Source: Utricularia gibba
Taxonomy: Eukaryota > Plantae > Magnoliophyta
Direction: 5' to 3'
DNA length: 64,000 nucleotides
NCBI GenBank assembly: GCA_002189035.1
Contig: NEEC01000002.1
Span: 5,828,001 to 5,892,000 of the forward strand
Below the pieces are notes generated by a model. It did not search any database. It saw only the letters and a program-made list of their open reading frames with translations, and was not told the origin of the DNA. Shown piece by piece: positions 1 through 30,763 of this stretch. The position numbers were made by a program, and so were the translations under genes. Each line of letters begins with the position of its first letter. Within the stretch, counting starts at the first letter, position 1.

Positions 1-125
1 TTCTTGCACGCATGACACAAATCAATAATTGGCTTTGCTTGTGTAGATGCCGACCCAGAAGCTTCAGCGGAGGATTTGGAGTTTGATTTGTTTTCCTTGC
101 TGCTTGTTTTGTTCTGCGACATCAT
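1..125 (-). CDS. FLZ: FLZ (FCS-like zinc finger) short-class gene, 5' part of exon 1; truncated by window edge
   Basis: Reverse strand reads MMSQNKTSSKENKSNSKSSAEASGSASTQAKPIIDLCHACK, nearly identical to the intact copy at 6085-6393 and including the first CxxC. Confidence 0.85.
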   Translation of the reverse strand, partial: MMSQNKTSSKENKSNSKSSAEASGSASTQAKPIIDLCHACK

Positions 126-563
126 GGTGATTGTGTAGTATGTAATAATGTTATATAGAGATTAGTATTATATATACACATCAGAATGGAGTAATTACTT
201 CTGCCTTTTTATTCCTTTATAGAATAAAATAATGGAAATTGGATTTTGTTACAATAACTTAAATAATTAACGTGTGAAAAATTAACATACATTCATATGA
301 CACGCCTTCTCTAATGGAAAAAGTTGTAAAACTGTGAGAAAATGATTTTAATAAAAACTAATAGTAGCGTATAAATATAATGAGTGTATGAATATATGAT
401 GTACAACTGTAAAGATTAACATAATACAAAAAAAGTTTATAATCTATGTACATTTATTAAAACAATTATATTTATAATAATAAGTGATATTTCAATGATA
501 AATATAAAACAAAAATTAGTATTTAAAATATTTAAATGATTAATGATATTAGAAATTAAAATC

Positions 564-1057
564 TGATGGGATATAAATCAGTTGGGGATGATCGGATTTT
601 AAAAGGCTTCCAAAAGGAGCTCTGACAGGATAACACCAGTCAGCAACCGATATGTGTCAGAGATTTGACAGCGATGACCGTATGACAGGAATAGGCAGCC
701 GATGTTTGAAAAGCAGGGTCGCATAGCAGGTCCAAAAGTAACCGACACGAGGTGAAGAATCGGCTAGACTGGCCTCCTCTATAAATAAAAGGAATCATGA
801 CAGGAGAAGGGATTGGATCCCTAGCCTCCCAATTTGTACCAATCTGTATCTTTCTCCATCATCTCCGTTTAGTAAACATTTTCTCCAGCGAGTTCCGACA
901 GCTCCGTGGTTTTTCAGCCTCACGGTGGTTTTCCGTTAAAAATCCCCGCCTACTTCTATGTTATCCAATCAAACTGAACAGACAGCAAAAAGGACACAAT
1001 ACCACCCGCAACCCGAAAAGTCGGCCCAATCCTGCATATCAATTTTCATCCGTAAAA
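564..1057 (+). mobile_element. Solo-LTR-like insertion (494 bp) with 5-bp target-site duplication AAATC
   Basis: Absent from the paralogous empty site at about 6830 (attaaaatc|aaaattgg). Flanked by AAATC at 559-563 and 1058-1062, starts TG, has an internal TATA (ctataaataaaagg, about 779-792) and is GC-richer than its flanks. The 3' end lacks a clean CA. Confidence 0.7.
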
Positions 1058-2929
1058 AAATCAAAATTAGTTAATCGATTGATATTATGCATAATGGCAA
1101 ACAATTCAAACTAGAATCATAGTTTAAGTTTTTGTACCATTCTCAATTTAAAACGAAAACTGAACAAAAACAAGTCAATTTGTCAATTTTGGATCCAATG
1201 GAATCAATGGTTCGAATCCACAAACTATCATTTCAAACACCCACGTGATCCGTTGTGAGTATCTAAAAAAACTTAAAGAAATGATGTTGTGAATACATGA
1301 AACATTTTTCGCAGTGTATGCATACATACATAACAATCATTATAAGTACATAAAAAAAACTTCGAAAAATATTGTGTTTATCAGATATCCACAATGGTTC
1401 ATATGAATATATTGAAAATATAAATATTTTTTGGAATATTTTCATACACGCAAAAAAGAGATTATGGATGATTGAAAATAGAATTTTTATTTTTAAATTA
1501 ATTTTTAATAATTAAAACCATGGTTTGAATTAAACCATATGGTTCAATTATGATTTTAGTTCCGGTTTGGTTCAAGTTTAATGATTTCGATTTTAAACTG
1601 AAACCATAACTAAATTAAAAAAAAATTAATTTGATTATTTTCTACAAAAAGATATTGACTTTAACATTAAAGGCATTTAAAGAATTTAATATTTTAAATG
1701 ATGACGTTCGTGCCGATTCTCTTTCGACATTGCATTCAATTTCAAAAAATCCAACATCCGAGAAATTTGATTAGCAAACCGTATGTATTATTTACTATTA
1801 CATTATTCGAAATAGAATTTTATAAAAGAAATAAGAGAATTTTTATTAATATATGAATGTTAAAAAAACATATAATTAAAAATTGAATATTCAAATGATA
1901 TGCATCTATATTATTATATATCCAATATTTAATATGTGGATCAAAAATAAATTTTGGTTTTGTTTGTTAAAATAGTGTGGACATGTAGGCAATGAGGGAA
2001 ATGAAATAGGAATTGAGGCTATGCTGCAAAAGTTATTTTAAAATTGATTTTAATAAAAAAATTTTTGGATAAAATAAGAATTGACATATACTTAGAAGTA
2101 TTTTTTTAGAATAATTATTACATAATGAATTCATATTTGATTTGTAAAAAAATAAGATTTGATTTCAACAATTAAATGATATACTTCTAAATAATTATTG
2201 ATAATTATATTTTACAAATTTAAAACATATATTTATATTTCATTTATATTATAAAATTATTATATTATTTTTTAATTATAATTGATGTTTAATTTAATTT
2301 AAACATTTTTATATTAAAATTATAATTTTAAATTAAATTAATTAATTATTGATAATAGTATTAATTATAACTATTTATAAATAAATAGATATAACTATAA
2401 TTTTAATTTTAAGAACACTTTTCAAAAATCAATTTTTAGAAAGAAGTTATCATTTGATGTTTTTAATAGAATATAAATGATTTTTAAAAATTAAATTTAA
2501 TAATGTTCAAAATATGGAAAAATTCTATCAAAATAGTTTTGATTCTATGGATTTCAAAACATTGATTGAGAATGGTTTGTCATCCCCAAGTTGGATATTG
2601 CTCCCAATGAAGTCTTTGCATTAAACTCGTGTATCATTTTCAACGTTTTGATATTTTGAAAAGTTGTTTTCTGATTCTATATATTTTAACCTCTCTCTGA
2701 CTGATTTTGGAACCTTTCAAACTCAGCTTGATCAATCTCAATTTTGATGGGTATTTCACATAACTCAAGTTACAAGTTAAGGTGATCATCATACTAACAT
2801 AGGAATAAATAATAATGTTCTTATTGAATAATGGGCAAATAATTGTTGTATAATTGAGTACACGAAGTAATTTGTGTATATACAAAAGATGCTATCTATT
2901 AACGTTTTGAAATCAAACATAAAAAATGC

Positions 2930-3225
2930 AATAATTCCAAGGCCATATAATATGAATAATATTTACTACTATGGAATCTTTGATTCTTGCAAACCAATAC
3001 ATCTATATTCAGTACCTTGTTTCCTTTATCTAGACAAAAAATGCATGAAATATAGCATTTGAGTCCAGCCCGCTAACTGGTATATGAAGGGACTTCAACC
3101 ACTGCTTTTCAATTGCATGTATGGAATATATAAAGAAGAGAGTTTCTAGAATTAGATGCAGTAGCTTTGAATAAAGATTTTGAATTTGATGTACTTTTTT
3201 TGCTGGTTGGCTTGTTCTCCGACAT
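2930..3225 (-). pseudogene. FLZ: FLZ short-class pseudogene (paralog of 17306-17587)
   Basis: MSENKPTSKKSTSNSKSLFKATASNSRNSLLYIFHTCN*: first Cys TGC>TTC, in-frame TGA, an indel and degenerate splice sites. An exon-2 remnant aligns with the 17.3 kb copy. Confidence 0.8.
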
Positions 3226-3719
3226 AGTTGCGTGATATTTTGTTAATTATAATATTATTTATAAATACGAGACAAGAAACAAGAAGGAACATAATTGATA
3301 TTTAGCTGCCCATGGTCTATAAGTTCTGGCCAACAATAGTATGAGTGTTATGAATAATATTTGCATTGAAAAAAAAAAAAGAGGAGAGAATAACATATTT
3401 TTCTAGAGTAGAGAGAAACCAAAAAAAAGACAAAAACAAAACCAAAACCGAAGAGGAGAAAGGCGACGATTCACAAGTAGATTTCAGTTTGGAATTCTTA
3501 CAGCACTAAATCTAGTTCCGAGATACTGTTTCGTGCTGAAAACAATAGCTACGGAGCATTAAGAACTAAACTTGACTTTTTTTATCTATTGTAAACGTTT
3601 TATGTTTATTGTTTTATTTTCAAATTTATGACCACTAATATAATTCAATTTTTAATTTTTGAAGTACTGATTTTGTTTTTCATCTTGAATAGTTAAATTT
3701 ATGGATGACTTAAGGTATG

Positions 3720-5640
3720 AAAAAATGATATTTAGGTGGTCTGCAGTCAAATGATCATATATTCAATAATTTTGAAAGGGATATTAAAAAAAATGTAAAT
3801 GATTTTGTTTACAAATATAGCATATTAGTATGAATGAACCACAAACACACAGCAAAATGTTACTGTCAAAAGGTTGAATCGGAGTTTATTCTTACAAAAG
3901 AATATCAAATTATGATTAAATTATAGTTGAATTATGATGAAACGATGATTGAATCACTATTGATCGAAACATATTGTTCGAAAATAAAGTATTCATGTGA
4001 GTTCATTAAGAATTTCGATCAAAATATATTACTTCTCCTATTATGCCTAACTTAGATTACTTCTTACAATGATCTCTTTATACTAGACTCATGTACATTT
4101 TTTCAACATAATCCTTTTGATATTTCTAGACCTAGTTTTTCAAACTCATGATCCACATCTTCTTTGTACGATATTGTATGTTTCGAATAGTCAATCATTA
4201 CGATTTTATGTTTTTCTCTTTCAGAAAAAAACAATTCATCTAAATTAATAAATATATCTCTATTTAAGTACATATTCTCCGTCGCATATAATCAATGTAG
4301 GATATTATCATTAGGCATTTAATCTTATATTAATTCCATCTTAAACCTACATGCATTCGGATATGACTATGATACTAAATACTTCCTCAAAACTACAAGT
4401 TAAGGTGATCATCATACAACTATAGAAACTTATAATATTGCTCATATTAAATATTAGTAAGATAATTATAGTTTAAGGTACACTTGGTAATTTGTATATC
4501 TACATAAGGTACTATAGATCAAACCTATGAAATCAATTATCCTTTCACAATAAAATAAGCCTTACAACATTTATTGCAGCAAAATCTATAACCTATTGCA
4601 GCAAAATCTATAACCCCTGCAAACCAAACAATTCTATTTAGTACCATGTTTACTTTGTTTATAAGAAAGAAAACATGAAAGGTATCATTTCATTGCACCC
4701 CACTTACTTGTATATGTGGATATCATCATAAGGGCGGATTTTCATCTTGCACCCATGGCACAAATCAACAATTGGCTTTGTTTGTTTAGACTCAGACCCA
4801 GACCCAGACCCAGAAGCTTCAGTTGAGGATTTGGAATCTGATTTTTTTTCCTTGTTGCTTGTTTTGTTCTGCGACATCATTGTGATTGTGCAGTGTGATG
4901 ATGTTCTATAGAATTTAATGTTATATATAGATAAAAAAAATAGAGTGTTCTCTTCTATCTTTTTAATCTTTTTTAATTAATATAATGAAATATTAGAAAT
5001 TGTATTTGCGATAATAACTTGAAGTATGAAAAATTAACAGCATTCATATGATAAATTTTCTTTAACCGAAAAAATAATAAAAACATGAATAGTATTGTGC
5101 AAATAAAATGAGTGTAGGAATATTTGATGTACAATCACAAAGATTAACATAATGCAAAAAACTTTACAATATATAACCTACATAGTTATTTATATTAAAA
5201 ACAGTTATATTTGTAATGGCAAGTGATATTTTAAATTTATATTTAAAATATTTAAATGATTAATGATTTTCACAATATGACATTAAAATCGAAATTGGTT
5301 AATCGATTAACATTAAGTAGAGAACAATCAAGTGAGTTAGTAGATTTATTAGTATTAATTATCATAATTTAGAAAAATGGGTATAATCGTAATTTCATTC
5401 TTAATTTTCATATAAATGCTATTATATATTGATTTTTCAAAATTCAATTTTTCTAAAATATTAATTTTCATTAAAATAGAATTTGATATATATTTCAAAG
5501 AAAAAAAGTAATTCTATTAGAATAAAAGTGATATTAAAGACTTCCAAACATTCATTTAGTCGATTTTGATGGAGTTTTATAGTTATTTATTATGTATTAT
5601 TATGTGTTAATTATATATTAAATCGTTCAATTAGAAATTA
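3720..5640. repeat. Segmental duplication unit, paralogous to about 12080-13950
   Basis: Long collinear similarity (e.g. tgcagtcaaatgatcatatattcaataattt and cctaacttagattacttcttacaat) spanning the FLZ copies at 4.5-4.9 kb and 12.9-13.2 kb. Boundaries approximate. Confidence 0.85.
4537..4880 (-). pseudogene. FLZ: FLZ short-class gene disrupted by a 22-nt tandem duplication in exon 2
   Basis: Exon 1 4880-4708 (MMSQNKTSNKEKKSDSKSSTEASGSGSGSESKQTKPIVDLCHGCKMKIRPYDDIHIYK), GT-AG intron, exon 2 from 4616 reads GYRFCCNRL* (stop 4586-4588). Removing one 22-nt copy restores GYRFCCNKCCKAYFIVKG* ending at 4537. Confidence 0.8.
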
Positions 5641-6084
5641 TATTGATAATTAATTTATTTTCCTTAGAAAAATTCGATTTTCCTATTTTGTATATATTTT
5701 CTGTTTTTTTTTCGTGCTCTTTGACCGAAACATGTCATGAGACTGTCGTGTAGTGTTGCAGTAGATCAGACTTTGACTTTTCGTATATTATATATATTCG
5801 TAATCAATGTGAGATATTGTCATTAAATCTTTGAACTTACATTATCTCCTTTTAAACGCTCAATATTTTTGCTATGTGGCCTTGTCTCACCCATTAGCAT
5901 GCATTCACATTTGGCTATAATGCTAAATGTACTCTCAAAACTACAAGTTAAGTCAATCATTATACTACTGTAGAAGTTTATAATATTGCTCATATCGAAT
6001 AATAGTAAGATAATTATAATTTAAGATACACCCATTAATTTATGTATCTACACAAGGTTCTATGTATCAAGACTATGAAATCAA

Positions 6085-6393
6085 TCATCGTTCCAACATA
6101 AGATAATTTTTGCGACATTTATTAGAACAGAATTTGTAATTCCTGCGAATCAAATATCTCCAGTTAGTTCCCTGTTTATTTGATCTATATAAAAAAATAA
6201 GAATAAAAGATATCATTTCAATGCACCTCACTTACTTGAATATATGGGTATCACAAGAATAGCGGATTTGCTTCTTGCACGCATGGCACAAATCAACAAT
6301 TGGGTTTGTTTGTGTAGATGCAGACCCAGAAGATTCGGCTGAGGATTTGGAGTTTGATTTCTTTTCATTGCTACTTGTTTTGTTCTGCGACAT
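6085..6393 (-). CDS. FLZ: FLZ short-class microprotein, 71 aa, intact; join(6393..6236, 6142..6085)
   Basis: MSQNKTSSNEKKSNSKSSAESSGSASTQTNPIVDLCHACKKQIRYSCDTHIFKNYKFCSNKCRKNYLMLER*. Fits C-X2-C-X17-FCS-X2-C; canonical phase-2 GT-AG intron. Confidence 0.85.
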
Positions 6394-8820
6394 GGTTGTG
6401 ATTATAGTATGTAATAATGTTCTATATAATTTAGTATTATATATAGATATCAGAATGGAGTACTTCCTTCGGTCTTTTTATTTCTTTATAGAATAAAATA
6501 ATGGAAATTGGATTTTGTTACAATAACTTGAATAATTATCGTGTGAAAAATTAATAGGCATTCATATGACAAATCTTCTCTAACAGAAAAAAATGTAAAA
6601 CTTTGAGAAAACGACTTTAATAAAAACGAATAGTAGCGGATAAATAAAATGAGTGTATGATGATATACAACCGTAAAGATTAACATAATACAAAAAAAGT
6701 TTACAATATATATGTACATTTATTAAAACAATTATATTTATAATAATAAGTTATATTTAAATGATAAATATAAAACAGAAATTAGTATTCAAAATTTTTA
6801 AATGATTAATGATTTTCAAAATTAGAAATTAAAATCAAAATTGGCTAATCGATTGATATTTATGCATAATTGTAGTCAATTCAAATTGTAATCTCAGTTT
6901 AAGTTTTTGTATGGTTCCCATTCTATAACCAAAACTGTACAAATTCAGATGGGTTTGTCATTTTTGGATGAGATGGAATCAATGGTTTGAAGTCGCAAAC
7001 TGTCATTTTAGACATCCAGATGATTCGTTGTGGGTGTCTACAAAAACTTAAAGAAACGCTGTTATGAATGCATGTAAAAAGTCAACATTTTTTGCAGCGT
7101 ATGTAGACATACAAAACAATCGTTATGGATACTTAAAAAAACTTTAAAAAATATTGTGTTTATCATACATTCACAATGATTCATAGGAATGTGTTGAAAA
7201 TATAAAATATTTTTTGGAGTGTTTCAAGACACCCATAAAAGATATTATGTATGCTTGAAAATAGAATTTTTATTTTTAAATTATTTTTTTATAATTAACA
7301 CCGTGGTTTTAATTAAACCATACTGTTCAATTCTGATTTTAGTTTCGATTTGGTTCAAGGTTCATAATTTCGATTTCAAACTGAAACCATAACATAATTT
7401 GACATTGAACCGCATTTTATAATTGAGTTAGTCAATTTATTAATATTGACATTTATAACTGGACACAACACTATTATTAAGTAACCAAGGGTCAAGTGAG
7501 TTAGTCAATTTAGAGGGAGATTCTACAAAACTCGTTATGCATTAAGAAAAAAAAATAAATTTAATTTGATTATTTTCTATACAAAGATATTGACATTTAA
7601 CATTAAAGTCATTTAAAGAATTTAATATTTTAAATGATGACGTTAATGTTGATTCTCTTTCGACATTATGTTCAAGTTATTTCAAAAAATTCAACATCTA
7701 GGAAATTTGATTCAATTTCGTTGTGAATTTTGGTCATTTGATTAATTTTCTCTACATACGTATTTAATTTTATATGTTAAAGATAGAGACTTGATGTTAT
7801 AATATCATATATATTTTCATATATTCTTAACTGAATTTAGAGATAATCTAATAAATATATTATGTAATTTAACATTTTAAGATTGATAACATTTTGTTTG
7901 TCAAAATAGTGTGAACAAGTAGTGGTGGCAATGAGTGAATTTTAGGTTTCCAATATTGAAATGAAATAAGAATTGAGGCTATGCATGTAAAAATTATTTC
8001 AAAATTGATTTTAAAAAAAATGAAAATTTTGAAAAAAATTTCAATTGAAATATTCTTAGAATTATTTTTTTTAGAACAATTATTACATAATGAATTCATA
8101 TTTGAATTGTAAAAAAAAAATAAGAATTGATTTCACCAATTAAATGACATTTATATATAATTATTATTAATTATATTTTATAAATTAAAAAATATATTTT
8201 ATATGTCATTTGTATTACAAAATTATTATATTATTTTTTAATTATAATTGATGTTATTAATTTAATTTAAATATATTTATATTAAGATTTTAATTTAAAA
8301 TTAAAGTAATTAATTATTTATAATAGTATTAATTATAACTATTTATAAATGAATAGATATAACTATAATTTTAATTTTAATTTTAATAACACTTTTCAAA
8401 AATCAATTTTTAGAAAGAAGTTATCATTTGATGTTTTTAATAGAATCCAAATTATTTTTAAACACTAATTTTCATTAATTAAATTTAATATATGGAAAAA
8501 TATGGAAAAATTCTATGAAAATAGAATTGATTTTATGGATTTCAAAACATTGATAGGGAATGGTTTGTCATGTTGAAGTTGGATGTTGCTTCCAATGAAG
8601 TTTTTGCATTGAACTCATGAATCCTTTTCAACACCAACATTTTAATATTTTGGGATGTTGTTTTCTGATTTTATACATGTTAACCTCTATGTGAATGATT
8701 GGGAGTTTTCAAACACAACCTCATCAATCTCAATTTTGATCGGTATTCCACATAACTTAAGTTGATCATCATAGGAAGAAATAGTATTGCTTATATTGAA
8801 TAATGGACAAATTTTATATA

Positions 8821-8860
8821 TTCTTTGCTAGTTGGTTTGTTATGCGATATAGTTGCATGA
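8821..8860 (-). pseudogene. Remnant of an FLZ 5' end; most of the gene deleted
   Basis: ttctttgctagttggtttgttatgcgatatagttgcatga matches 3197-3235. It is joined directly to sequence matching the 3' flank (about 2840), so about 350 bp including the finger is missing. Confidence 0.6.
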
Positions 8861-10189
8861 TAATTTTATTCGTATTTTCAGATTATAAAATTACGATATT
8901 TGATGATAAAACAAGGTATTTTAATTGTGATTTTTAATATTTTTTAATTATAATATTATTTGTATTTTTATACATAATATAGATTAAATTAGATAGTATG
9001 ATTTTTAGTGTTCTTCTAAATATTCGTAATAGCATTATGAATAAAATTTAGCTAGTTTGTAAGCACAAGTCAATGGTCACAAAAAACAATAAGGAGCATG
9101 ATTGATATTCAATTGTCCATAGCCTATAGGTTCAAGTCAACAACAGTGTGGGTGTTAGTAATAGTATTTGAATTGAGAAAAAAAAGAGAAGAGAAGAGAA
9201 TAAGATATTTTTCTAGAATGGAGAGAAACCAAAAAAAGAGATGAAAACAAAATGAAAAACCGAAGAGGAGAAAGGATGTGATTCAGAAGGAGATTTCAAT
9301 TTAGAATTCTTTCACTAAATCTAGTTCTATGATAATGTTTCGTGATGAAAACAATAGCAACCGAGAATGAAGAGCTAAACTTGGATTTTTTATGCATTGT
9401 GAATGTTTTATGTTTATTTCTTTATGTTCGAATTTGTAACTATGAATATAACTCCATTTTTAGTTTATGTAGTAATGATTCTATTTTTCATCTCGAATAG
9501 TTAAATTTAGGAATGCTTTAAAGTGTGAAAAAGTGATGTAGTTTAGGGTTTATGAGATAATCTATCGTTATGTATATTAGATTTTGTTTCTAACATCTTT
9601 TGGGTAGACTCAGGGAGGGGGATGGGAACGAGCAGTGGCGTAGCTCGGAAGCTTAGTTTAAAGATATACCAACGAATTAAGATTAGGATAGTAGATATTA
9701 ATTCTAGGTAGAACAGAGTATACCTAATTTTACACATTTTGCATAGACATAAGTGTGAAATGAATGATGATATTAAAGATTGACTTACCAAAAATATAAG
9801 AAACAACTTGGTTACATTACATCGTTTAGAATAAGCATATAAATAAATTGCAAATTAGAATAGAAACTTGAACACCACATCATCTAAAATATTTTTAGGC
9901 ATCTTAGTATTATTTTATGTTTAAAACTTACATTTTTTATTTTTAGCATTGAGAATCGATTATACTTATTGAACTTCATTCTGTTGTTAACTTGATATTG
10001 GATTAAAAGTAGCGTTTATTTTAAAATCTTCGTCTCAAAAAATACATGACAAACACATACTCTTTGTGATCGACACCAAATTCCATTATACATTTTGTAT
10101 TGAATTTATTTTTGTAAGGATTAAGACTTATAAATTTAATTTGATATGAGAATTTATTTTTATGCAAGATATTAAATTCTGTATATTCA

Positions 10190-12420
10190 TATGATATGTT
10201 TTTTAACTGAAAAAGGCATATATCAACATTTGGTGTAATACCATAAAGATTAACACAATATAAAAAAGTTTAGAATATCATATCTACATTGTTATTCGTA
10301 TTAATAATAGTTATAGTTATAATAACAAGTGATATTTAAATAAAAATAATATTAATTTTGATTACTTGTTACAAAAAACATATTAACATTTAACTTTATT
10401 GTAAATAATTTATGTTTATAGTGCCCACACCCCATGTCATATTACATGTGATTTGTTTACACATCATGGGAATACTTCACATTCAACATTGTGATCCCAT
10501 TCATGTCAATGTTTGCATATCCCTATTAACTAAACCCCTCTCCAATTGCAGTACTTGGGAGATGTGGGTTAAATTGAATTTTGTTAAAATTAAGGATACA
10601 ATAGATAGAACAACCATATATATGATATCCAAACACACAAAAAATGTAGATTCCATTCTAAAAATTTGTGTTCAATTAATTAATAACAAAACACAAATAT
10701 ATTTCACAATATCAATTTAATTTTCTGAGATTTTTTAACTTGAATGTATTTCCTTGCTTTATTTTAATTGAGACTTACACCAATACGAATCTCTCTTTAC
10801 AAATCAAGTCATGCTTCAAGAGAGAATTTCATACCATGCTCAAATTAAGGTTCGATAGATTAAGCAAGTATACGTAAAACTCATGTAAACAAAATACATG
10901 GATCACCTGTTCCTTTACCAAAATCGGGTTGAGGTATTTGGTTCTATTATTTTCTACAAAATATATATATATAACAGTTGATTCTTCTATTTTGCACATA
11001 TTTTAAATAAGTTGATTCTGATAAGCAATTCTAATAACAGTTCTATAATTATTTTTATTTTATTCAGATTTGGCGGCGTTTTTTCAAAGCGGGGTCATCC
11101 ACCTGTTTATCCGATTCGTTCTGTGCGCCCGACGACATCATATTCTTGATTACTTCTTCATCAAGCACCAGTTGCGAATGGCGACATCGCAGGGAACAGA
11201 ACTCGCAGTCCCTGAAAAGCGAAACCGAACACATCTCAGGCCACCAGAACCCGTACATGAAGACATTCCCAGTTATTCAGTTACCTGTACATGAAGACAT
11301 CAGTGTTGGGTTCGAGATACTTCCTGCAGTAATGGCAGTACTGGAGAAACGTCTCAATGGTTAGCCCTCTGTATTGTTTCGTGACGGGGGCGATGAAGAA
11401 AATGCTGGAACGCGAAGATTTGTCTTCGCCCACTGCGTCAATCTTAGTCACTGGGTCCATGTCTGAGTGTCGTCCTCGCTGCATGAGTGTCTCTCTGTAT
11501 ATGTAGTTGAAGGTTGGGGCAAATGTTCAACGCTTCAGTGAAGACGATCTTATTCTTTGCCGTGAAGTTTAAAGCCCAAAGTCATGGGAAGTTTTTGAGG
11601 AACCGGAGATTGAAGCGATGTGGGAGGAGATGATTTGGTAATTACATCAAAGAATGAATTTAGGGGAAAGGGATTGAGATAATCGAAAAGGCAAAAATGG
11701 GTTTTGTGAATCATGCTAGCGGTTGCTTCTCTTTCGGCACAATTCCATGGGTGCTTGTGAACCTTTCGGTAGCACTCCCCAAATCTTGAACTATTGATAA
11801 TGTTGTGTGCTACATGAAATGTCGAAAATATTTTGAAAAATTCGATATTTGAAAAATCTGATTCCGTTCTTCTTATCAATGTATAAACTATAATGCGAAT
11901 TTGATAATCTAATATTCGATTCATATTGGAAAAGTATTCTTTTTTTTAATTTTTTTTTTGTATTTAAAAAAGTTGTGCATCAATTGTATATTTTCGAAAA
12001 AACATTATTCGTAATATGACATTATCGGATGCAGATTTTTTTTTTTAAAAAAAGAAAAGACAATATTATAGAAAATTGAAAATCAGATATTTAGGTGTTA
12101 TGCAGTCAAATGATCATATATTCAATAATTTCCGAAAGGGATATTAAAAAAATTAATATTCATAATTAATGGAAATGATTTTATTTACAAATATAAGATA
12201 TTAGTATGAATGAACCACAAACCCACAGCAAAATGCTATTGCCGAAAGGTTGAATCGGAATTTATTCATACGAAAGAATATCAAACTATGATTAAATTAT
12301 AGTTGAATTGTGATGCAACGATGATTGAATCACTATTGAAGAGTTATTTGTTTATTTTGATCGAAACATATTGTTCAAACATAAAGTATTCACGTTAGTT
12401 CATTAAGAATTTCGATCAAA
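10190..12420. repeat. Segmental duplication unit, paralogous to about 17830-20110
   Basis: 10190-11060 aligns with 17830-19100 and 12015-12420 with 19735-20110. The FLZ gene at 11064-11484 corresponds to the deleted remnant at 19648-19690. Boundaries approximate. Confidence 0.8.
11064..11484 (-). CDS. FLZ: FLZ long-class protein, 115 aa, intact; join(11484..11285, 11211..11064)
   Basis: ...ETFLQYCHYCRKYLEPNTDVFMYR|DCEFCSLRCRHSQLVLDEE...DDPALKKRRQI*. Matches the FLZ consensus FLxxCxxC...D(I/V)FMYR...FCSxxCRxxQ...DE; 73-nt GT-AG intron. Confidence 0.92.
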
Positions 12421-12932
12421 TTATATTACTTCTCCTATAATGCCTAACTTAGATTACTTCTTACAATTAGCTCTTTGTACTAAACTCATGTATATTTTTT
12501 CAACATAATCCTTTTAATATTTCTACACCTAGTTTTTCAAACTTACAATCCACATCTTCTTTGTACGATATTGTTTATTTCGATTAATCAATCTTTACGA
12601 TTTTATGTTCTTCTCTTTCAGGAAAAAAAAATCATGTAAATCTATAAACATATCTCTATTTAAATGCATATTCTCCGTCACATATAATCAATGTGGGATA
12701 TTATCATTAGGCATTTGATCTTACATTAATTCCATCTTAAATCTACATGCGTTCGGATATGACTATGATACTAAATACTTCCTCAAAACTACAAGTTAAG
12801 GTGACCATCATACAACTATAGAAAATTATAATATTGCTTATATTAAATATTAGTAAGATGATTATAGTTTATGGTACACTTGTCAATTTGTATATCTACA
12901 TAAGGTACTATAGATCAAACTTATGAAATCAA

Positions 12933-13242
12933 TTATCCTTTCGTAATAATAAAATAAGTCTTGGAACATTTACTACTGCAAAATCTGTAACCCCTGCAAA
13001 CCAAACAATTCTATTTAGTACCATGTTTACTTTGTGTATAAAAAAGAAAGCATAAAAGGTATTATTTCAATGCACCCCACTTACTTGTATATGTGGACAT
13101 CATCATAAGGTTGGATTTGCATCTTGCACCCATGGCACAAATCAACAATTGGCTTTGTTTGTTTAGATCCAGACCCAGAAGCTTCAGTTGAGGATTTGGA
13201 ATCTGATTTCTTTTCCTTGTTGCTTGTTTTGTTCTGCGACAT
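12933..13242 (-). CDS. FLZ: FLZ short-class microprotein, 72 aa, intact; join(13242..13085, 12993..12933)
   Basis: MSQNKTSNKEKKSDSKSSTEASGSGSKQTKPIVDLCHGCKMQIQPYDDVHIYKGYRFCSSKCSKTYFIITKG*. Fits C-X2-C-X17-FCS-X2-C. Confidence 0.87.
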
Positions 13243-14848
13243 CGTTGTGACTGTGTAGTGTGATGATATTCTATAGAAATTAGTGTTATATATAGATAAC
13301 ATAATAGAGTGTTCTCGTATATCTTTTTATTTTTTTTAATTAATACAATGAAATATTAGAAATTGAATTTTGTGACAATAACTTGAAGTGTGAAAAATTA
13401 ACAGTATTCATATGATAAATTTTCTTTAACCTAAAAAATAATAATAATAAATGAATAATATTGCATAAATAAAATGAATGTAAGAATATTTGATGTAAAA
13501 TTACAAAGATTAACATAATGCAAAAACTTTAGAATATATTACCCATATTGTTATTTATATTAAAAATAATTATATTTATAATAGCAAGTGATATTTAAAT
13601 TATAAATATAAAACATAAATTTGTATTTAAAATATTAAAATGATTAATGATTTGCACAATATGAAAGTAAAATCGAAATAGGTTAACCGATTAATATTAT
13701 GCAGAGAACAGTCAATTGAATTAGTTGATTTATTATTATTAATTCTTATAATTTATAAAAATTGTTATAATTATAATTTCATTCTTAATTTTCATATAAA
13801 GGCTACTGTCTATTGATTTTTATAAAATTGAATTTATTCTAAAAAATTAATTCTCATGAAAATAAAATTTGATATATATTTAAAGAAAAAATAATAATTC
13901 TATTAAAATAAAATTCATTTTAAAGACTTACAAACATTCATTTTGTCGATTTAGAGTGAGTTTCTAAAAAACTAATTATATGTTAACAAAAAAAATAATA
14001 TTTAATTTGCAAAAATATATTAACACTTAACATTGAAGACATTTAAATAATTTAATATTATAAATGATGGTGTTAGTGTTGCTTATTTTTCGACATTAAG
14101 TTAAAATTATTTTGCAAAATTAAATATCCATAAAAGTTGATTCAATTTCATTGTGAATTTCTGGATATTTCATTAATATGTTCTACATATGTACTGAACT
14201 TATATTTTAAAGATAGTAACTTGTATATATTTTTTCATATATCCGTAAGTGAATTCTTTAATAATATAATTAATTATAGCATTTAATTTAATCCTTTTGA
14301 ATTTATTACATTATCATTTAAAAAAGACTTAAGAATCAATTATATTTTTAGAATAAAATATTAAGAAAACGTTATATATAATATAATATTACATTTTTTG
14401 ATATAAAATTTTATATTAAAATTAGAATATATTTAATAATATAATAATTTTCTAGAACATGATAAAAATTGAAAATAAAATAATCAAGTGATATGTACCT
14501 AAATTATTATATATCCAATATATAATATATGGATAAAAAATAATTTTTTGTTTTGTTTGTGAATATAGTTTGGACTAGTAAAGGTGGTAATGAGTGAATT
14601 TTAGGTTTTTAATGTTGGAATGAAATAGGAATTGAGATTGGTTTTCCACACCCAACTTGATTTATTAAAACAAATAATCATATATCAAGAATTGAAAGTG
14701 AAATTATCATACATATAATAAATTCAATACCAATAGTAATCCATTAATTCTATTTTTTTCTAATATGATCTATATTTATTATATAATTAGAATTTATGTG
14801 TGTTTGTTCGATCCACTGAATCCTTAATTTCAAAAGTCATTGTATTGA

Positions 14849-15230
14849 TGTAACGACTCACTTTCACCTTGCACAATATTGTTCACTTCGAACATCCAAT
14901 CCTCACGAATTTACATTATCCCCTTTTAGGGAAAAAATTTCATACAAAATTAGAAAAATCCATCTATTTAAGCATGCCTCATCTCTCATTAGTAATCAAT
15001 GTAAGATATCGTAACCATCACAAGACACTTGGCCTCACATTCATTCCCTCTTAGACCCTTAATGTCCTCGTTGAATATCATCTCATCCCACCATTTGTTC
15101 AAGCTAGGATTTGTTTTAATATCAAATGTAACGATTCACCCTCGCCTTGCAAGATATTATCCATTTCGAACTTCCGGCCCTCACGATTTTACGTTTCTCT
15201 CCTGAGGAAAAGGTATTGATAACAAATATT
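14849..15230 (+). mobile_element. Degenerate pair of roughly 80-100 bp direct repeats starting TGTAACGA (TRIM/small-LTR-like)
   Basis: tgtaacgactcactttcaccttgcacaatattgttcacttcgaac (14849) vs tgtaacgattcaccctcgccttgcaagatattatccatttcgaac (15127), 278 bp apart. No PBS, PPT or TSD identified. Confidence 0.4.
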
Positions 15231-15374
15231 TTTGAATGTTTAAGAATAGGAAAATAATTAATATTTTGATGTAAAACTCAGATTTTATTGTTTATTTGTA
15301 CGTTTTTGTGATTAGTGGCATTTTTTGCATCTTTTATTTCTAATTATAACTAAATCTTGATTTAGTCTCAATTT

Positions 15375-15830
15375 TAGTTCTAATCATTCTCTTGAGCAAT
15401 GTAGCACGTTTTAGCAGCCCAAATCCCAAGTAGTCGAAAGTGTACAGTGGAAATGGCAGAGAAATGGAGATAAAAACTGAAAATAGAAGATACTAAATTC
15501 CAAGGTGATAAAAAGTGGATTTTGGATATGATAAGGAGTGAGTAAAATATCTATACCACCTAGGAGAGCATGCCACAGAATTATGGGGAGGGGGAAAGGA
15601 AGAAAAATCACAAAAACCATGAAGAAGAAGGAAGACAAAGAAGAAGCTTCTTTTCATGAATACTACTCCTAGCCGAGAGTAGTTTTAGCTTTCCGTTTAT
15701 GTTTATATTTCTTTCTTTGTTGTTGCACTGCAACATGAACATGTTTTGGTTGCTATATTATGAACGTATTTTGTTTTACCTTATTATGAATGTCTAAACA
15801 CTTAGAGGTGCTTTGGGATAAAGATGGATG
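15375..15830 (+). mobile_element. Possible retrotransposon LTR fragment
   Basis: A purine-rich block followed by a T-rich block (gtttatgttt...tatgaatgtctaaac) resembles Gypsy-type LTR composition and is unrelated to the flanking duplicated units. No termini defined. Confidence 0.3.
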
Positions 15831-16461
15831 AGCAAGTTTATTACTAGACCACATTACCACTTAATCATTCTATTTTCTTATCAAACCAAGATAGATTCAG
15901 GAGATGGAGTTAATAGTTTTCATCATAAACAATACTAATTAGAGGTAGACAAAAAATTAAGAAAAAATAAAGGTTTAAATAGACTTGAACCTTTGTTTAT
16001 TAGATGAATGATTTTAGATTTAGATAAGATAATTGTAATTATTAGCATGCTACCCTTGAATGTCTCAAGTCATCAGCTTCTTTTATTTTAGATAAAGATT
16101 TACTTTTACTTGTTTACCATCAATCTACATAATATTGTTGAACTAACTTAATCTTAGTTTTCATTAAATCTCTTAAGCATGAAGAAAGCAGTATGTATCA
16201 ACCTTTATATAACAAGCACATAACTCTTTTTTTTCGTTTCTGATTCATTATGCTCATATTTTTCATATGATTGACTGTGAATTAGGGTTACAAATTTTAT
16301 TTGATAGAAAATTTTGCATATTAACGACATGCATCATTTTTCGTTTATCTAGCCTCATGCAAGATTAAGAAAATTTCTCTATTTAAGCATGTTTTCTATC
16401 ACGTCCATAATCAATATAGGATATCGTAACTATCACAAAGCACTAGGCCTTACAATTGGAC

Positions 16462-17059
16462 TAGAGCTGGGCACGGTTACGGGTTGACCCATGTATCCGG
16501 TGGGTCAACCTGATGACGGGTCCAACCCGTGACTCGTAACCGTCGAAAATAGGTACAAGACGGGTTGGTTGTAAACGGGTGTGAGTCGACCCGGTGGGTC
16601 ATCAAGAAGATGTCCAGGCACTGCCATAGCATTTTTTAGGTGCCTAGTGAATATTGAAGTGAGGCTCTTTCAGGCACCGCAATGACATGTTTACAATGCC
16701 CATAGAGTATTGAAGCCAGTGTCTTTCAGGCATCACAATGGCATGTTCGCAATGCCTGGCAAATATTGAAGACAGTGTCTTCCAGGCACCGCAATGGCAT
16801 GTTTGCGGTGCCTGGCGAATATTGAAGTCAGTATCTTCCAGGCACCGCAATGGCATATTTATGGTGCCTAGAGAATATTGAAGGGAGTGCTTTCCAAGTA
16901 TCGCAATGGCATGCTTGCAGTGTCTAGAGAATTTACTAACCCGTGTCAACCCGTGACTCGGGACGGGTAAGCCTGTCTAACCCGTCAACCCGTACCCGCC
17001 GAGTCAAACATTTCATTTTTTACCCGGTGGGTCCGACCCGTGACCCGTGCCCAGCTCTA
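16462..17059. mobile_element. Non-autonomous TIR element (MITE-like, hAT-type ends), 598 bp
   Basis: Perfect 15-bp TIRs TAGAGCTGGGCACGG / CCGTGCCCAGCTCTA, many subterminal ACCCG/CGGGT motifs, and flanking direct repeat CAATTGGAC at 16453-16461 and 17060-17068. Confidence 0.9.
16606..16935. repeat. Tandem repeat, 56-bp unit x5 plus one partial, with palindromic units
   Basis: GAAG unit starts at 16656, 16712, 16768, 16824 and 16880. The unit at 16768 contains GAAGAC-agt-GTCTTC and CCAGGCACCGCAA-8nt-TTGCGGTGCCTGG. Confidence 0.92.
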
Positions 17060-17305
17060 CAATTGGACTATTGTATTCTTTTCTATATAATCATTTCAAC
17101 ATTTCAAGATTTACTTTTCTGATTCTATGCAATTGATGATCTCTCTGAATGATTGGGAACTTTCAATCCCAACCTGATCAATCTCAATATTGATGGATAT
17201 TCAACATAACCCCAAAGCTACAAGCTAGGGCAATTTGCATACTATATTTGTGTATGTACCAAAGGTGCTATTTATCAACGGTCTGAAAATCAATCATCGA
17301 ATATC

Positions 17306-17587
17306 CTATAGTTTCGGGGCCATATAATATGAACAATATTTACCAGTACATAATCTTTTATCCCTGCAAACCAACACGTCTCCATTCAGTATCATGCTTT
17401 CTTTATCTAAACAAAGAACACATGAAAGGTAGCATTTGTGTGCAGCCCACTTGTATATGAAGGGACTTTGACTACTGATTTTTCCCATGCATGCATGGCA
17501 TATATAAAGAAGAGGGTTTCTAGATCCAAACGCAACAGCTTTGTCTGAAGATTTGGAATCTGATGTGGTTGGTTTGTTCTCCAACAT
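17306..17587 (-). CDS. FLZ: Divergent FLZ-like microprotein (about 64 aa); join(17587..17451, 17363..17306)
   Basis: MLENKPTTSDSKSSDKAVAFGSRNPLLYICHACMGKISSQSPFIYK|DKRLCTGKYCSYYMAPKL*. Same intron position as its paralogs; second half of the finger is altered (LCTGKYC). Confidence 0.7.
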   Translation of the reverse strand: MLENKPTTSDSKSSDKAVAFGSRNPLLYICHACMGKISSQSPFIYKWAAHKCYLSCVLCLDKESMILNGDVLVCRDKRLCTGKYCSYYMAPKL

Positions 17588-19647
17588 GATTGCCACCATG
17601 TAGTTTGTAATGATATCTTGATGGAGGTGAATTCTATATATAAATATCATAATGAGTCATCTACCATTTTATTTGTTTTTAATTAACATACCTTAATCTT
17701 GAAAACTAGATTTTGTTACAAAGATTTAAGTAAATAAATTATGCACATTCGTATGATACATCTTTTTAACTGAAAAAGACATAAAACCGTAAGAGAATGG
17801 ATTCAATCAATAAAAATGAATTATATTGTACAAATAAGACACATATGTCAATATTTGGTGTTAATACCACAAAGATTAATATAATACAAAAAACTTTAAA
17901 ATATAGGATCTACATGTTATTTGTATTAAAAAATAGATATACTTAAAATAAAAAGTGATATTTAAATAAAAATAATATTTAATTTGAATACTTTTTACAA
18001 AAAAATATTACTATTTAACATTATTCTATATAATTTATGTTTAGAGTGCTCACACCTCACGTGATATTACACATGATTTTTTTTTTACACATCATGGGAG
18101 TCCTTTACATTCAACATTGTGATCCCACTCATTATCAAAAGGCAACATGATTGGGAGATGTGGGTTAAATTCAATCATAGTTAAAATTAAGGATACAATA
18201 GATAGTACAAACATGTATATGAAATCATAGTTAAATGATTATATTCTAAAAATTTGATTTCAATTAATTAATAATAATACACGACATCTTATATATTTTA
18301 CTATACCAATCTAATTTTTTGACATTTTTTAACTTTAATGTATTTCCTTGTTTTCTTTTAATTGAGACGTAGGCCAATATGAATCAATATTTACTAATCA
18401 AGTCATGCTTTAAGACAAACATTTGGATATTATGCTCAAATTAAGATTCCGATAGATTGAGAAATCATGTGTAAAACTCATGTAAACAAAATATATCTAT
18501 CACACTCAAAAATTTTGGACTAAATTAATTGTTAATAATTCATAATTTATTATATAATTACCATATCACATTAATTCTGAGATTGTTGGTTCTAATAATA
18601 AATATGTGCTCTGCATGATCAACTCATACACTGTGTCACAGCTGATGACCATACAATTCATAACTAGGAGAAAGATATACCGTAAAATATTATTTCAAGA
18701 TAATATTTGTAATCCCTAACATTGAACACAATCTATATACTAGTTATATGAACATGAAATCAGGGTTTAACTCCTAAAAAATAATAAGTGATTTTAATTT
18801 TTTTAGATTAAAAATCATTCATATTTGCTAACAAAATTATTTTTGTAATAATTTTTTAATAGTACAATATTACACGTGTTTACATTTCTGTGCAGCAAAA
18901 TAATTCTACTGTATTGAAGTCCATCGTTCATGACTAACCCGGTCGGGCAGACCGGGTCACGGTTCCTAAACTAAAATTGGATTCAGGTATTTTCTACAAA
19001 AAAATATTTTTTAAATAACTTCCACTTTTTATTCATCTATTTTGCACATATTTTAAATAAGATGATTCTGATAATCAATTTGAATAACAGTTCTATATAT
19101 AATGATAGATAGTTGTGAGGAAGTTGTGTGATAAAATAAGACTGGCCACCTAATCGAATGAGCCCAAACATTGGATGTTCATATTCGTTCGTAATATTTT
19201 TTATCCAAAAATGTTGTTCAAACACAAGTATTCATGTTCGTTTACTAAGAGATATTATTCATGTTTGTTGAAAAGAATTTTGTTTTCAAATAATAAATAT
19301 TCAGTTAGCTAACTAACCCTAAAGATAAAAGTACAATTGGAGATGAGAATTCCTATCTGTTATTTTTTTCCTTGTAAATGTCATAGTTATCATTGACTTA
19401 ACATGTGACATAGTTATTTAACTGTTACATTATTTTTTTTATTTTTTAAGTAGTGAATAATAATTTTAATAGCATATATATCAAATTGACACCAATATGT
19501 AACGTTTAAGATGTCTGATAACACGCTTAATATTATCTTATAATAACACGCTTTAAACTAACACAATTTTCAATCCTTACATTTGAACCCTAGGAACACT
19601 CCATTATCAAATATATCAATTTACATGTCATTAATTATTATTTTTTT

Positions 19648-19690
19648 TTAGATTTGCCGACGTTTTTTTAAAGTGGGGTCATCGTTGCAT
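19648..19690 (-). pseudogene. Internally deleted long-class FLZ remnant
   Basis: ATGCAACGA (start of the 11484 gene) is fused directly to TGACCCCACTTTAAAAAAACGTCGGCAAATCTAA (its last codons). The upstream gagtgtctctctgtatat...ggggcaaatgttca matches 11485-11530. Confidence 0.8.
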
Positions 19691-20602
19691 GAGTGTCTCT
19701 CTGTATATATAGTTGAAGATTGGGGCAAATGTTCATAATATATTATCGGATGCGGAATTATATAAAAAAAAAAGAAAAGAAAATATTATAGAAAATTTAA
19801 AATCAGATATTTAAATGGTCTGCATTTATATGCTCAATAATTTCCGAAAGGAATTTTTAAAAAATAATATTCATAATTCATGGATATGATTTTGTTTACA
19901 AATATAAGATATTAGAATGAACCACAAATACACAGCAAAATCCTACTGTCGAAAGGTTGAATCTGAATTTATTCTTACGAAAGAATATCAAAATTTGATT
20001 AAATTATATTTGAATTATGATGAAACGATGATTGAATCACTATTGAATCGTTATTTTTTTATTTTGATCGAAATATATTGTTCGAACATAAAGTATTCAC
20101 GTTCGTTCGTTAAGAATTTCGATTGTAACATATTATTCGAAAACGAATATTCATGTTAGTTCATTAACCATTTCTAATAGAATTTTGTTTTCAAACAACA
20201 TTAGATTATTCAGTTACCATTGAATTTTTAATTTGTTGAGAATTCAATTACCGAACAGTCAAAATAAGAAAAGGGCAATTGGAGACATTGATTTCTATCT
20301 AATTTTTTGCATTACAAATGTTATAATTATCATTCGGTAGTGTTTTTTATGGTAGCTTCAAATTAATAAAATTATTATCTGGTATTTAATTTTTTTCTAT
20401 TTTACAATTAGTAATATTATCATGCGAGGTCAAACGTATAACGTTTAACAAATATGATTATCATAAAATAACATAATTAATGTATAGCGTTTAACAAGCA
20501 TTATTTTCGTAAAATAACATCTTTAGAACTTATACACTTTTGAAACCCTCCAATTTGAAACTTAGTGACAAACCATATAATCCATTACAGTTTAGATGTC
20601 AT

Positions 20603-21041
20603 TTAATTATTTTTCTTATTTGTCCAATATGCCCACGTTCTTTTAAAATAGGAGTCATCCACCCGTTTACCCGATTCGCTCTGTGAACCCGCCGCCATCT
20701 TCCTCTCTATAGCTTCGTCGAGCGCCATCTCAGAACGGCGGCACTGCTCGGAGCAAAACCCACAGTCCCTGCAAATTGAAACCCAGCACATCACAAGGCG
20801 AGCCCGCACCGCCGTCATCGACTACAAAAGCGCAGAGAGTTTGAATTTCACAGACAGTCAATCCGTCAGTTACCTGTACATGAAGATATCCTTCTTCGGG
20901 AGAGAAGGCTCCTGCAGGAATGGCAGTACTTGAGAAAGTTGTCGCCTGTTTGCATTCCGCAGCGTTTGGAGACGGCGGCGATGATGAAAATGGTTCAACC
21001 TGAAGGGATGCCTACGCCCATCGGGAAACATATGGGTCCAT
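20603..21041 (-). pseudogene. FLZ: Long-class FLZ, probable pseudogene (or N-terminally truncated gene)
   Basis: DNFLKYCHSCRSLLS(P)KKDIFMYR|DCGFCSEQCRRSEMALDE, with a GT-AG intron at 20769-20873. There is an in-frame TGA at the codon aligning with Ser of the 11484 copy, and a -1 shift at the GGG run 20898-20900. Confidence 0.75.
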
Positions 21042-22843
21042 TTCGCCGGTGTGCGGTGTCTGATAAGCTTCAGGAGTGTCTGTATATATAGCTGAAAACT
21101 GGGGAAAGTGCAGTGAAGACCGTCTTTACTTTGAACCAAAGCATGAATTCAGGGAAAGGGGATTCAGATAATGCAAAAGGCATTCATGGTTTGTGAAGAT
21201 GATGGTAGCATTGATTCTCTTTCGGCATTACACTCATGGCGTGTTTTGTTTTATTAATTTCATGAATTTTTTTTTAAATTTTTTAACATTTGAATCTTTA
21301 TTAGTTCGATAGTAAAACAAAAAATTTAGATTATGTGATTAACTTTACAAATTATTATATTTATTAAATTTCTATTTCAAAGATTAAATAATATATTAAT
21401 TAAAAAGATTATACTATTCAATTTTTATCTATTTATATTGTAATATTAATTATATAATAATTTAATATATTAAACTTTACAATATATATATATATATTAT
21501 TAAAATTTATAATAATTTTATATTATCACACAAAACAATTTTACAATCTTAAATTGATTATATTTACATAATCTGAATCATAGTTTCAAATTATAAAACA
21601 AGCCCTCAACTTTTTGAACAAAGAATTGAATATTGAAAAAATCTGTTGAATTTATGGACATTCGATTAATATTTTTTTATATACTAAAGAGACGATTTTG
21701 ATGTTCTAATATTGTATGCATTTTCTAGATATTCATGTATGAATTCATTAATAATTTAATTAAATATATTATTTAATTTCATCCTTTTAATTTTATAATA
21801 ATTTATAAATTATAATGATTTATTGTGATTTTAAAAGGTTATGGTATCACTTATATTTTTTTTAATAAAAATATTGTCTTAACATTATAAATAATATCAT
21901 TCAAGAAAACTCAATTTAAAATTTCAAATTTTATAATGTCACAGTCTAAGAAGATATTTATGAATGCAAGAATGTTACAGAAAATTGTAAAAATAAAAAA
22001 TTGTAATGATGAAAATCAAAATCAAATATTCGATTAATTTGTATCTGAATTATCGGATATTCAATAATTTCGACTACAGATATTAAATTTGCAAATATAC
22101 ATATTCAGCAGGTGGCAACAAATGAATTTTAGGGTTTTGATGTTGGAATGAAATGGGGATTGGGAGTGGTTCGTGGTTGCTGCTTCTGGCATGATAAGTT
22201 CTAGAGCACCACGGCCTGCATTGGTGTCATCTTCTCCGAGGCGGCGACGCCCAACTTGGGTTTCTGCACGTAGTGAGGTCTCTGCATTGGATTCATGCTC
22301 CTTGTCCGATACGATCGTTACGATATTCAGCAGTGGATGCAGTCTCTTTAATTCTATGCATTTGTTCCTCTTGGAATGATTGTATAAATCAAACCCGAGA
22401 CAAGCGAGAGTCTTTTAGGGTCGTTTTTGCATCTCCTGCACGTATAGACTTTTGGATTTCGGGGCATTTCTGAAACTCAATTCGATTTAATAAATTAGAA
22501 TCCTACGTATACATGAGGCTAAATTCACTTTCAAATCTATCAAAATGAGAAGGTTGATATCTAATATTAACTAATTGAAATTTTCTTCAACTAGCAGTAT
22601 GAGATCACGTTTTTACTTTTCCAATATATGAATTTTCAACAGATTGTGTGCTTCCAAACTCAGCCTCATAAATTTCAATTTTAGTAGGTATTGAGTATAA
22701 GCCCAGAGCTACAACTTGGTATCATAATCATACACTCGCAACTTCAATATATTATAAGAAGTCATAGTATTGCTCATATCGAGCAATAGGAAGATAAATG
22801 TAGTTCAAAACACAAGCAATAAGTTGTATATCTATTTATCAGA

Positions 22844-23152
22844 TCATCTGGCGCGCTTTTGTTCATCCTGCGCAATCTGATTTCTGCGGCATCTGGTAGA
22901 ACAGTATCTGTTATCCCTGCAAACCAACACATCTCCATTTCGCACAATGTCTCCTTTATCCAAAGAAATAGAGCAGAAAGGCACCCAAACCACTTACTTG
23001 TACATGTAGACAGTTCCGCTTGGGTGCATTGCAGTCCCGCAGCCATGGCATAAATCGGCAGGCGGGTTTCTCTCTGTAGACCCCGACGCATCAGCGCTGG
23101 CCGAAGATTTGGAACCTGATGTCTTTTCCTTGCTGCTTTTTTTGTTCCACAT
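22844..23152 (-). CDS. FLZ: FLZ short-class microprotein, 75 aa, intact; join(23152..22998, 22916..22844)
   Basis: MWNKKSSKEKTSGSKSSASADASGSTERNPPADLCHGCGTAMHPSGTVYMYK|DNRYCSTRCRRNQIAQDEQKRAR*. Retains the canonical CRxxQIxxDE tail. Confidence 0.88.
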
Positions 23153-29859: not shown

Positions 29860-30763
29860 CACCAACGGAACAAACAGCCTCTGCAAGATAATCGGAAAAT
29901 CAGAATACCAGTCAGTGATCAATTTTTATGAAATCAATTCATATTCACCAAATAAACAAGCAGATTCTAAAAGGATACCGAAGGATCACAAAAAAAACAA
30001 TACAAGAAGGAAATTAGGGCTACGAATCGACTCGCCAGTTGAGAAAAGAACGACACTCACAGCTTATTCTTCTTTCCTAGTGCTTAGAAATGGTAGCCAC
30101 GTTTCGTTTCTGTATGATATGGCGGGTGTGGTTGTCCGGCGGAGGCGGAGGCGGCGTCGAGGATGCGCAACGCTGTATGTTCTGACCTAATTCATTATAG
30201 AAAAACATTTGGGCCAATTTCAGACTTCGTAAGTGGGCTTCTTTGGTTTGCTTTTCATTAAAATTATTATATTTAATGGTAGAGTATATTATTATTTAAA
30301 AAATATTTTTTTGAATTATGAATTATTTAGAATTGCATTAAATTCGAATTCTTTTAAAATAAAAACTTTTTATAATTTAATCACTATTTTCACTATTTAC
30401 GATCAATTTTCGAAATGATCACTTTATTTTTTTCGTAAAAAAAATTAAAAAATAAGCTATTCAATTATGATTACCCAAATTAAGAATGGTATATACATGG
30501 ATCATGATTTTTTAATTATTAAAAAATAAAAATTATGGAATAGACTACCAAAATAATTATTATACTTATATTTTTAAATATAAATTATTTACATTAAAAA
30601 ACGAATAAAATGATTTATATACTTTTAAATTACGATAATAGAAAATAGAGAAAGGTTACGGGAATCTTCTCCCCCTTCCCTGTGTTATCTGCATTCTCTG
30701 CTCCTGAACAGCTACCTGCCTTCGGTGAGAAGCTTATGTGGAAGCCATTAGGCCTCACTCTAA

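Follow-up and report, generated by a model that had tools for sequence, protein, structure and literature searches.

How a plant comes to carry a crowd of very small zinc-finger genes side by side, and whether those genes still act, is the question raised by the first 23 kb of a 64,000-nucleotide (nt) stretch of Utricularia gibba DNA (assembly GCA_002189035.1, contig NEEC01000002.1, positions 5,828,001 to 5,892,000 of the forward strand). The whole of this stretch is referred to as the window, and all coordinates are given within it. The genes in question resemble those for FLZ proteins, which among plant-specific proteins are the main adaptors and regulators of the energy sensor SnRK1. An earlier reading of the letters, called here the original prediction, had claimed a same-strand array of eleven FLZ copies or remnants. 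Reverse-complement reading of all intervals, combined with explicit splicing, located every one of the eleven on the minus strand at the predicted coordinates. The intervals are real, but only four of the eleven copies, named here by their lowest coordinate as 6085, 11064, 12933 and 22844, hold intact canonical fingers, and 4537, 2930 and 20603 are broken. With a probability of roughly 0.5, the full explanation of the locus is a tandem cluster, specific to this lineage, of small FLZ genes whose short products would damp SnRK1 in the manner of Arabidopsis FLZ3.

Membership in the FLZ family was examined first at the level of the spliced products. Using the Pfam zf-FLZ hidden Markov model (HMM; PF04570, DUF581) with its gathering cut-off of 23.4 bits, four products score above the cut-off: 11064 (52.3 bits), 22844 (37.7), 12933 (29.8) and 6085 (28.0). 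The 17306 product gives no Pfam zf-FLZ match, and exon 2 of 20603 taken alone reaches 20.3 bits. The finger spacing is also as originally described, namely C-X2-C-X17-(F/Y)CS-X2-C in 6085, 12933, 22844 and 11064, and C-X2-C-X16-LCT-X3-C in 17306. Relative to the published FLZ signature of CX2CX17-19FCSX2C (PMC8380221), the four intact copies fit with all four cysteines in place, 22844 having YCS for FCS, and 17306 falls outside owing to its X16, LCT and X3. At the level of predicted structure, AlphaFold2 models of 22844 and 12933 show a beta hairpin followed by a C-terminal helix, with predicted local distance difference test (pLDDT) values across the finger of 86-95 and 82-91, respectively, and a disordered tail. 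When the 22844 model was compared with Swiss-Prot by Foldseek, the first 14 matches were all FLZ-family proteins of Arabidopsis, with a template modelling score by query of about 0.55; both sides of this comparison are predictions, and the AlphaFold2 input alignment included FLZ proteins. These matches include FLZ3 (93 amino acids, aa), IRM1 (113 aa) and FLZ17/18 (126 aa). In the ESM Atlas, exon 1 of 11064 lies nearest to zf-FLZ clusters with representatives of 77, 111 and 106 aa, and short FLZ proteins therefore occur elsewhere; exon 1 of 22844 alone retrieved just sub-threshold bacterial zinc-ribbon clusters. With the HMM score, the spacing of the motif, the position of the intron and the predicted fold in agreement, the assignment of the copies as FLZ (PF04570) genes is solid.

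The intron position deserves separate comment. The original prediction placed a single phase-2 intron inside the finger, and explicit splicing recovered it as a GT..AG intron of 73-93 nt. It splits a K/R codon after (Y/F)-x-(Y/F); the donor is AA/GTAAGT (AG/GTAACT in the long class, AA/GTGGGC in 17306, the slash marking the junction) and the acceptor ..CAG/G. Nearly all FLZ genes have a single intron (PMC11641214, PMC4529292). In an annotated FLZ gene of another plant (P0002 on L001, GCA_051175675.1), the intron has the same position and phase in both internal fingers, so the intron is a family trait. The annotated 167-aa FLZ gene at L001:10001-10734 (GCA_051175675.1, CM118637.1) itself contains a complete mini-FLZ unit duplicated in tandem. 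A lead rich in Lys, Ser and Glu, a finger and a separate phase-2 intron make up each unit; the mini-FLZ unit is therefore able to duplicate within one gene.

The copies fall into a short class A, a degenerate class B and a long class L. Three A copies are intact. Copy 22844 (22844-23152; exon 1 22998-23152, intron 22917-22997 of 81 nt, exon 2 22844-22916) encodes 75 aa and is the most canonical of the short copies, with a guanine-plus-cytosine (GC) content of 0.50. Copy 12933 (12933-13242; exon 1 13085-13242, intron 12994-13084 of 91 nt, exon 2 12933-12993) encodes 72 aa, and copy 6085 (6085-6393; exon 1 6236-6393, intron 6143-6235 of 93 nt, exon 2 6085-6142) encodes 71 aa. The intact L copy, 11064 (11064-11484; exon 1 11285-11484, intron 11212-11284 of 73 nt, exon 2 11064-11211), is a canonical FLZ gene of 115 aa. 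Among B copies, 17306 (17306-17587) retains an open spliced frame of 64 aa with a degenerate finger and an intron at 17364-17450 behind the weak donor GTGGGC. Together these products bear out the short-class size range of 64-75 aa that had been claimed. Directly downstream of 17306, a 56-nt unit is repeated 5.2 times (79% match) at 16641-16932, and an inverted repeat able to form a hairpin lies in each unit (arms 16753-16794 and 16803-16844).

The intact short products (71-75 aa) are made up of two parts, a disordered tail rich in Lys and Ser and then a bare FLZ finger. They have the size, single domain and kinship of a microProtein, being alignable with the 115-aa L copy. Indeed, A, B and L products can be aligned over their whole length and have a D-x-KSS motif in the tail in common; the short classes therefore derive, by shortening, from an L-like gene. 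A putative promoter element was also mapped. A single TATA box (TATATATA) lies 49-55 nt upstream of the ATG in all A-class copies, in the B copy 17306 and in the L pseudogene 20603; it occupies 169-176 for the copy at 1-125, 6438-6445 for 6085, 13287-13294 for 12933 and 23199-23206 for 22844. The 2930 pseudogene has TATAAATA 38 nt upstream, and no TATATATA box occurs within 120 nt upstream of 11064.

The remaining members of the array show how copies are lost. In class A, the copy at 1-125 is the 5' part of exon 1 only (41 codons, to CHACK), the gene continuing past the window start; it is 89% identical to 6085, upstream region included. Copy 4537 (4537-4880), 92% identical to 12933, is broken: its spliced frame of 67 aa ends in ...FCCNRL* without the fourth cysteine. 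A 22-nt tandem duplication (2.0 copies, 100% match) at 4572-4615 in exon 2 shifts the frame; being perfect, it looks like the product of very recent slippage, which disabled a gene that was otherwise intact. In class B, 2930 (2930-3225) is a pseudogene 76% identical to 17306, in which the first finger cysteine is gone, an in-frame stop lies within the finger and no donor fits the GT[AG][AG]G search pattern. Copy 8821 (8821-8860) is a stub of exon 1 (..NKPTSKE) with the remainder deleted, and its flanks at 7552-8812 and 9079-9537 are homologous to those of 2930. In class L, 20603 (20603-21041) is a pseudogene 67% identical to 11064, whose exon 1 meets a stop early and is shifted in frame at least twice, and whose exon 2 still reads DCGFCSEQCRRSEMALDE. 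Copy 19648 (19648-19690) is, on reverse-complement reading, a 3' end stub (..DDPTLKKRRQI*), and the adjoining 19732-20123 shares 85% identity with the spacer on the upstream side of 11064 (12008-12416).

How these pieces are arranged was examined by self-BLAST and a gene-region tree. Homology of 64-92% extends across flanks, introns and spacers and defines A-L-B units. On the minus strand, the order begins with A (22844), L (20603, dead), an L stub (19648) and B (17306). A second run consists of A (12933), L (11064) and a B stub (8821), a third of A (6085), A (4537, broken) and B (2930, dead), and the partial A copy at 1-125 stands at the end. Judged from these alignments, the array is a putative higher-order unit of short A, long L and degenerate B, present in at least three repeats, as expected from unequal crossing-over. 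Gene models and segmental homology likewise support the claim that tandem copies on one strand, some intact, some degenerate and some dead, reflect birth-and-death evolution. Chance similarity was gauged with 30 composition-preserving shuffles: a strict exon-1 half-finger pattern matches four times in the 64-kb window, in each case inside the array and with no match at 24-64 kb, against a shuffle mean of 0.03.

One part of the original prediction did not survive comparison with the literature. It held that no such array had been described, and a comparable annotated cluster exists on Brassica nigra chromosome B4 (PMC11641214, Table S1). There, BniFLZ19-BniFLZ25 are seven negative-strand genes spread over 108 kb at 48.78-48.89 Mb, given a passing mention as a tandem duplication. 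Their products of 69, 74, 74, 74, 74, 72 and 95 aa are basic and hydrophilic, and two of the genes span 308-309 bp (PMC11641214). Like BniFLZ19-25, the array in U. gibba is a same-strand zf-FLZ cluster, and 6085, 12933 and 22844 have gene spans of 309-310 bp. Compared by size, weight and isoelectric point alone, however, the molecular weights and isoelectric points differ, so these are not the same proteins. Moreover, the seven Brassica genes in 108 kb are all annotated as genes, whereas the U. gibba array packs eleven copies or remnants of mixed classes, many of them pseudogenes, into 23 kb. FLZ families are known to expand by tandem and by block duplication (PMC4529292). Tandem or local duplicates with two exons are likewise found in Arabidopsis FLZ17/FLZ18 and in the rice chromosome 2 and 4 FLZ clusters (PMC4529292), FLZ17/FLZ18 being small (126 aa) and among the top fold matches to the 22844 model. 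Unlike the present array, FLZ17/18 are two identical copies and the rice clusters are a handful of larger genes of 103-389 aa (PMC8380221), with neither 70-aa forms nor a mixed pseudogene array reported for either.

What might such small proteins do? The four-Cys FLZ domain mediates protein interaction (PMC4529292), and binding to the SnRK1 alpha subunit is known for canonical FLZ proteins (PMC10904321, PMC11641214). Arabidopsis FLZ3/DUF581-9 (O80506, 93 aa) binds the KIN10 catalytic domain and blocks GRIK-dependent phosphorylation of the T-loop (PMC10904321); a near domain-only FLZ protein is therefore already established as a SnRK1 inhibitor. The short copies are like FLZ3 in being tiny with little beyond the finger, and FLZ3 is a fold match to the 22844 model. 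FLZ3 differs in that it is a 93-aa, single-copy and experimentally characterised protein, whereas the copies here are of 71-75 aa, with about 28% identity over the aligned finger; they also bear an N-terminal tail rich in Lys and Ser, and the conserved helix motif behind the fourth cysteine is missing from two of them. Plant microProteins of the LITTLE ZIPPER and MIF type offer a resemblance that is conceptual only, as proteins with one interaction domain derived from larger relatives; no paper in the literature searched connects microProteins with FLZ and SnRK1.

With these precedents in mind, the favored explanation can be set out as a sequence of steps. The cluster would have grown through repeated unequal crossing-over of the A-L-B unit. 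Under birth and death, a few copies would remain intact as others gather stops, frameshifts and deletions. In the intact products, the finger may bind the catalytic alpha subunit of the SnRK1 energy-sensing kinase. The short products, being without the longer regions of scaffold-type FLZ proteins, could then damp or tune SnRK1 activation as does Arabidopsis FLZ3/DUF581-9. The original prediction further proposed that the short copies may compete at SnRK1 as microProteins. Their reading as SnRK1 modulators is plausible; expression, SnRK1 binding and any physiological role are what we infer.

That some copies are more than debris is suggested by what they have retained. In simulations of neutral drift with substitutions only and local base composition, the joint retention of the ATG, an open frame, GT/AG and four cysteines had a probability of about 5% for 0.10 substitutions per site, falling to some 1% at 0.15 and to no more than 0.4% at 0.20. 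Measured over the gene region and 300 nt of upstream DNA, the intact A lineages are 20-33% different; the terminal branch of 22844 measures 0.29. Given this divergence and these odds, joint intactness in three lineages is very unlikely without selection on intactness. The start codon and frame, splice sites and four cysteines are retained more often than neutral drift predicts, which argues that three short copies and one long copy have been kept by selection, at least historically.

Several observations weigh against the favored explanation. Among the A copies, pairwise ratios of nonsynonymous to synonymous substitution rates (dN/dS) run from 0.3 to 0.95, and one pair alone is significantly below 1 (p = 0.01, uncorrected). 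Exon 2 is conserved no better than either intron or upstream sequence. Moving into the array from 22844, the Pfam score drops from 37.7 to 28 bits and coding GC from 0.50 to 0.37, and 6085 and 12933, at just 28-30 bits, are without the R..QI..DE helix signature after the fourth cysteine. In the finger, the density of nonsynonymous differences is two to three times that of the Lys/Ser tail (p = 0.001-0.05 across four non-independent pairs), and synonymous differences are alike in the two regions. Canonical FLZ families show the opposite, with the domain under the tightest constraint (PMC4529292). On the side of transcription, 4450-13350 and 11000-13330 are present in no listed public RNA run, and four runs aligned to 17250-23240 yielded zero contigs and no spliced transcript; these runs are small (9-86 million letters of contigs) and of unspecified tissue, making this weak negative evidence. 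Relatives are equally scarce. A phmmer search with the 22844 product against 1.84 billion representative proteins gave five matches at E <= 1e-3 and no close relative, the best match reaching 51.7 bits at 38% identity and the top matches scoring well through carrying two fingers. Word-indexed homologue searches returned no candidate for exon 1 of 6085, exon 1 of 11064 or the full 11064 product. An exact look-up of the neighboring PPR and UTP18-like genes also came back blank, so this genome's proteome is probably absent from the collection and the blank searches cannot show that the genes are unannotated in their source.

A good part of this evidence would also suit a different account, possible if somewhat doubtful, in which the array is mostly a graveyard. 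It would hold at most one or two working genes (11064 and perhaps 22844), and the AT-rich copies 6085, 12933, 4537 and 17306 would be unexpressed, drifting relics. The short copies would seem intact merely as young duplicates of one another. Such decay would be in keeping with the zero RNA contigs, with dN/dS near 1 in several pairs (0.95-1.4 for 17306 against the A copies), with an exon 2 less conserved than the intron, and with the falling Pfam score and coding GC. It would also be in keeping with the recency of the break in 4537, and five to six of the eleven copies are visibly dead. The youth of the intact copies is harder to reconcile with their divergence, however. Between 6085 and 12933, identity is just 75-80% across intron and flanks (80% when the gene region is taken together with the upstream part), and against 22844 both stand at about 67-68% for the gene region, yet all three retain the ATG, frame, GT/AG and four cysteines at neutral odds of about 1-5% per lineage. 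In addition, the dN of the N-terminal tail is well under dS in most pairs, and the TATA box has kept its place upstream of the A copies, 17306 and 20603. On balance, a cluster in which some short genes were maintained remains the preferred account.

The contrast between finger and tail leads to another, unlikely reading, in which the short fingers were repurposed. They would keep the zinc scaffold alone and diversify toward partners other than SnRK1, for example in biotic interactions, as suggested by IRM1, a small Arabidopsis FLZ-fold protein that is itself among the top fold matches. Stated in terms of selection, it is rather improbable that the short copies are minimal FLZ fingers under diversifying selection, with ligands and Lys/Ser tail fixed and a fast-changing interaction surface. 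In favor of such a process, nonsynonymous change is concentrated in the finger outside its Cys ligands and the tail is conserved. Furthermore, for the portion of the finger encoded by exon 1, the three closest pairs give dN/dS of 1.4-2.2. Against it, Nei-Gojobori partitions give no significant dN/dS above 1 (e.g. one synonymous versus ten nonsynonymous differences, p = 0.67), and whole-finger dN/dS of 0.17-0.94 fits relaxed constraint equally well. The finger-over-tail pattern thus fits both relaxed constraint outside the zinc ligands and diversification. The conserved Lys/Ser tail of the A copies may have a function of its own, for example in localisation or as a degron. If the fingers were diversifying, they would supply SnRK1 modulators in several variants or proteins that bind new partners, perhaps in reproduction or biotic interactions, and the Brassica nigra cluster would be an independent, convergent case.

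Very improbable is the spread of gene fragments by transposon capture (Pack-MULE or Helitron type) in place of tandem duplication. In its favor, the region is very AT-rich and repeat-laden and has the 56-nt repeats downstream of 17306. Against it, the copies lie on a single strand in a fixed A-L-B order, their homology continues through the spacers, and they are complete genes with promoter box, start, intron and stop rather than fragments. It was rejected with no convincing terminal inverted repeats around any unit and no transposase domain in the spacer open reading frames (ORFs). The spacer ORFs gave no significant Pfam match (best E = 0.03), and Rfam found no family in 1-24 kb.

Beyond the array, the character of the DNA changes. 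GC content is 0.23-0.35 over 1-24 kb and 0.31-0.48 in the gene-rich remainder of the window, and the AT-rich array gives way to ordinary gene-rich DNA at about 23-24 kb. The neighbors on the minus strand include a UTP18-like WD40 gene (28165-29922), a RING-finger ORF (42641-43183) and an 874-aa PPR gene (44626-47250); those on the plus strand include an 11S globulin/cupin seed-storage gene (about 30.8-32.4 kb) and a UDP-glycosyltransferase-like gene (59553-61079). The 11S globulin scores 240-262 bits against solved 11S globulins, with little difference between several plant families. No FLZ finger is present in any of these five genes.

For the FLZ family, the gene kind, the mode of expansion and the mechanism of inhibition by a small FLZ protein are all known already, and the locus therefore adds a case rather than a concept. 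As a case, the array is a clean example of birth and death, one probably missed by gene callers built for longer ORFs. If expressed, its copies of 71-75 aa would be among the smallest natural FLZ proteins and would define a minimal SnRK1-engaging unit. Their fingers would then also make up a naturally varied panel with which the surface residues important for binding could be mapped.

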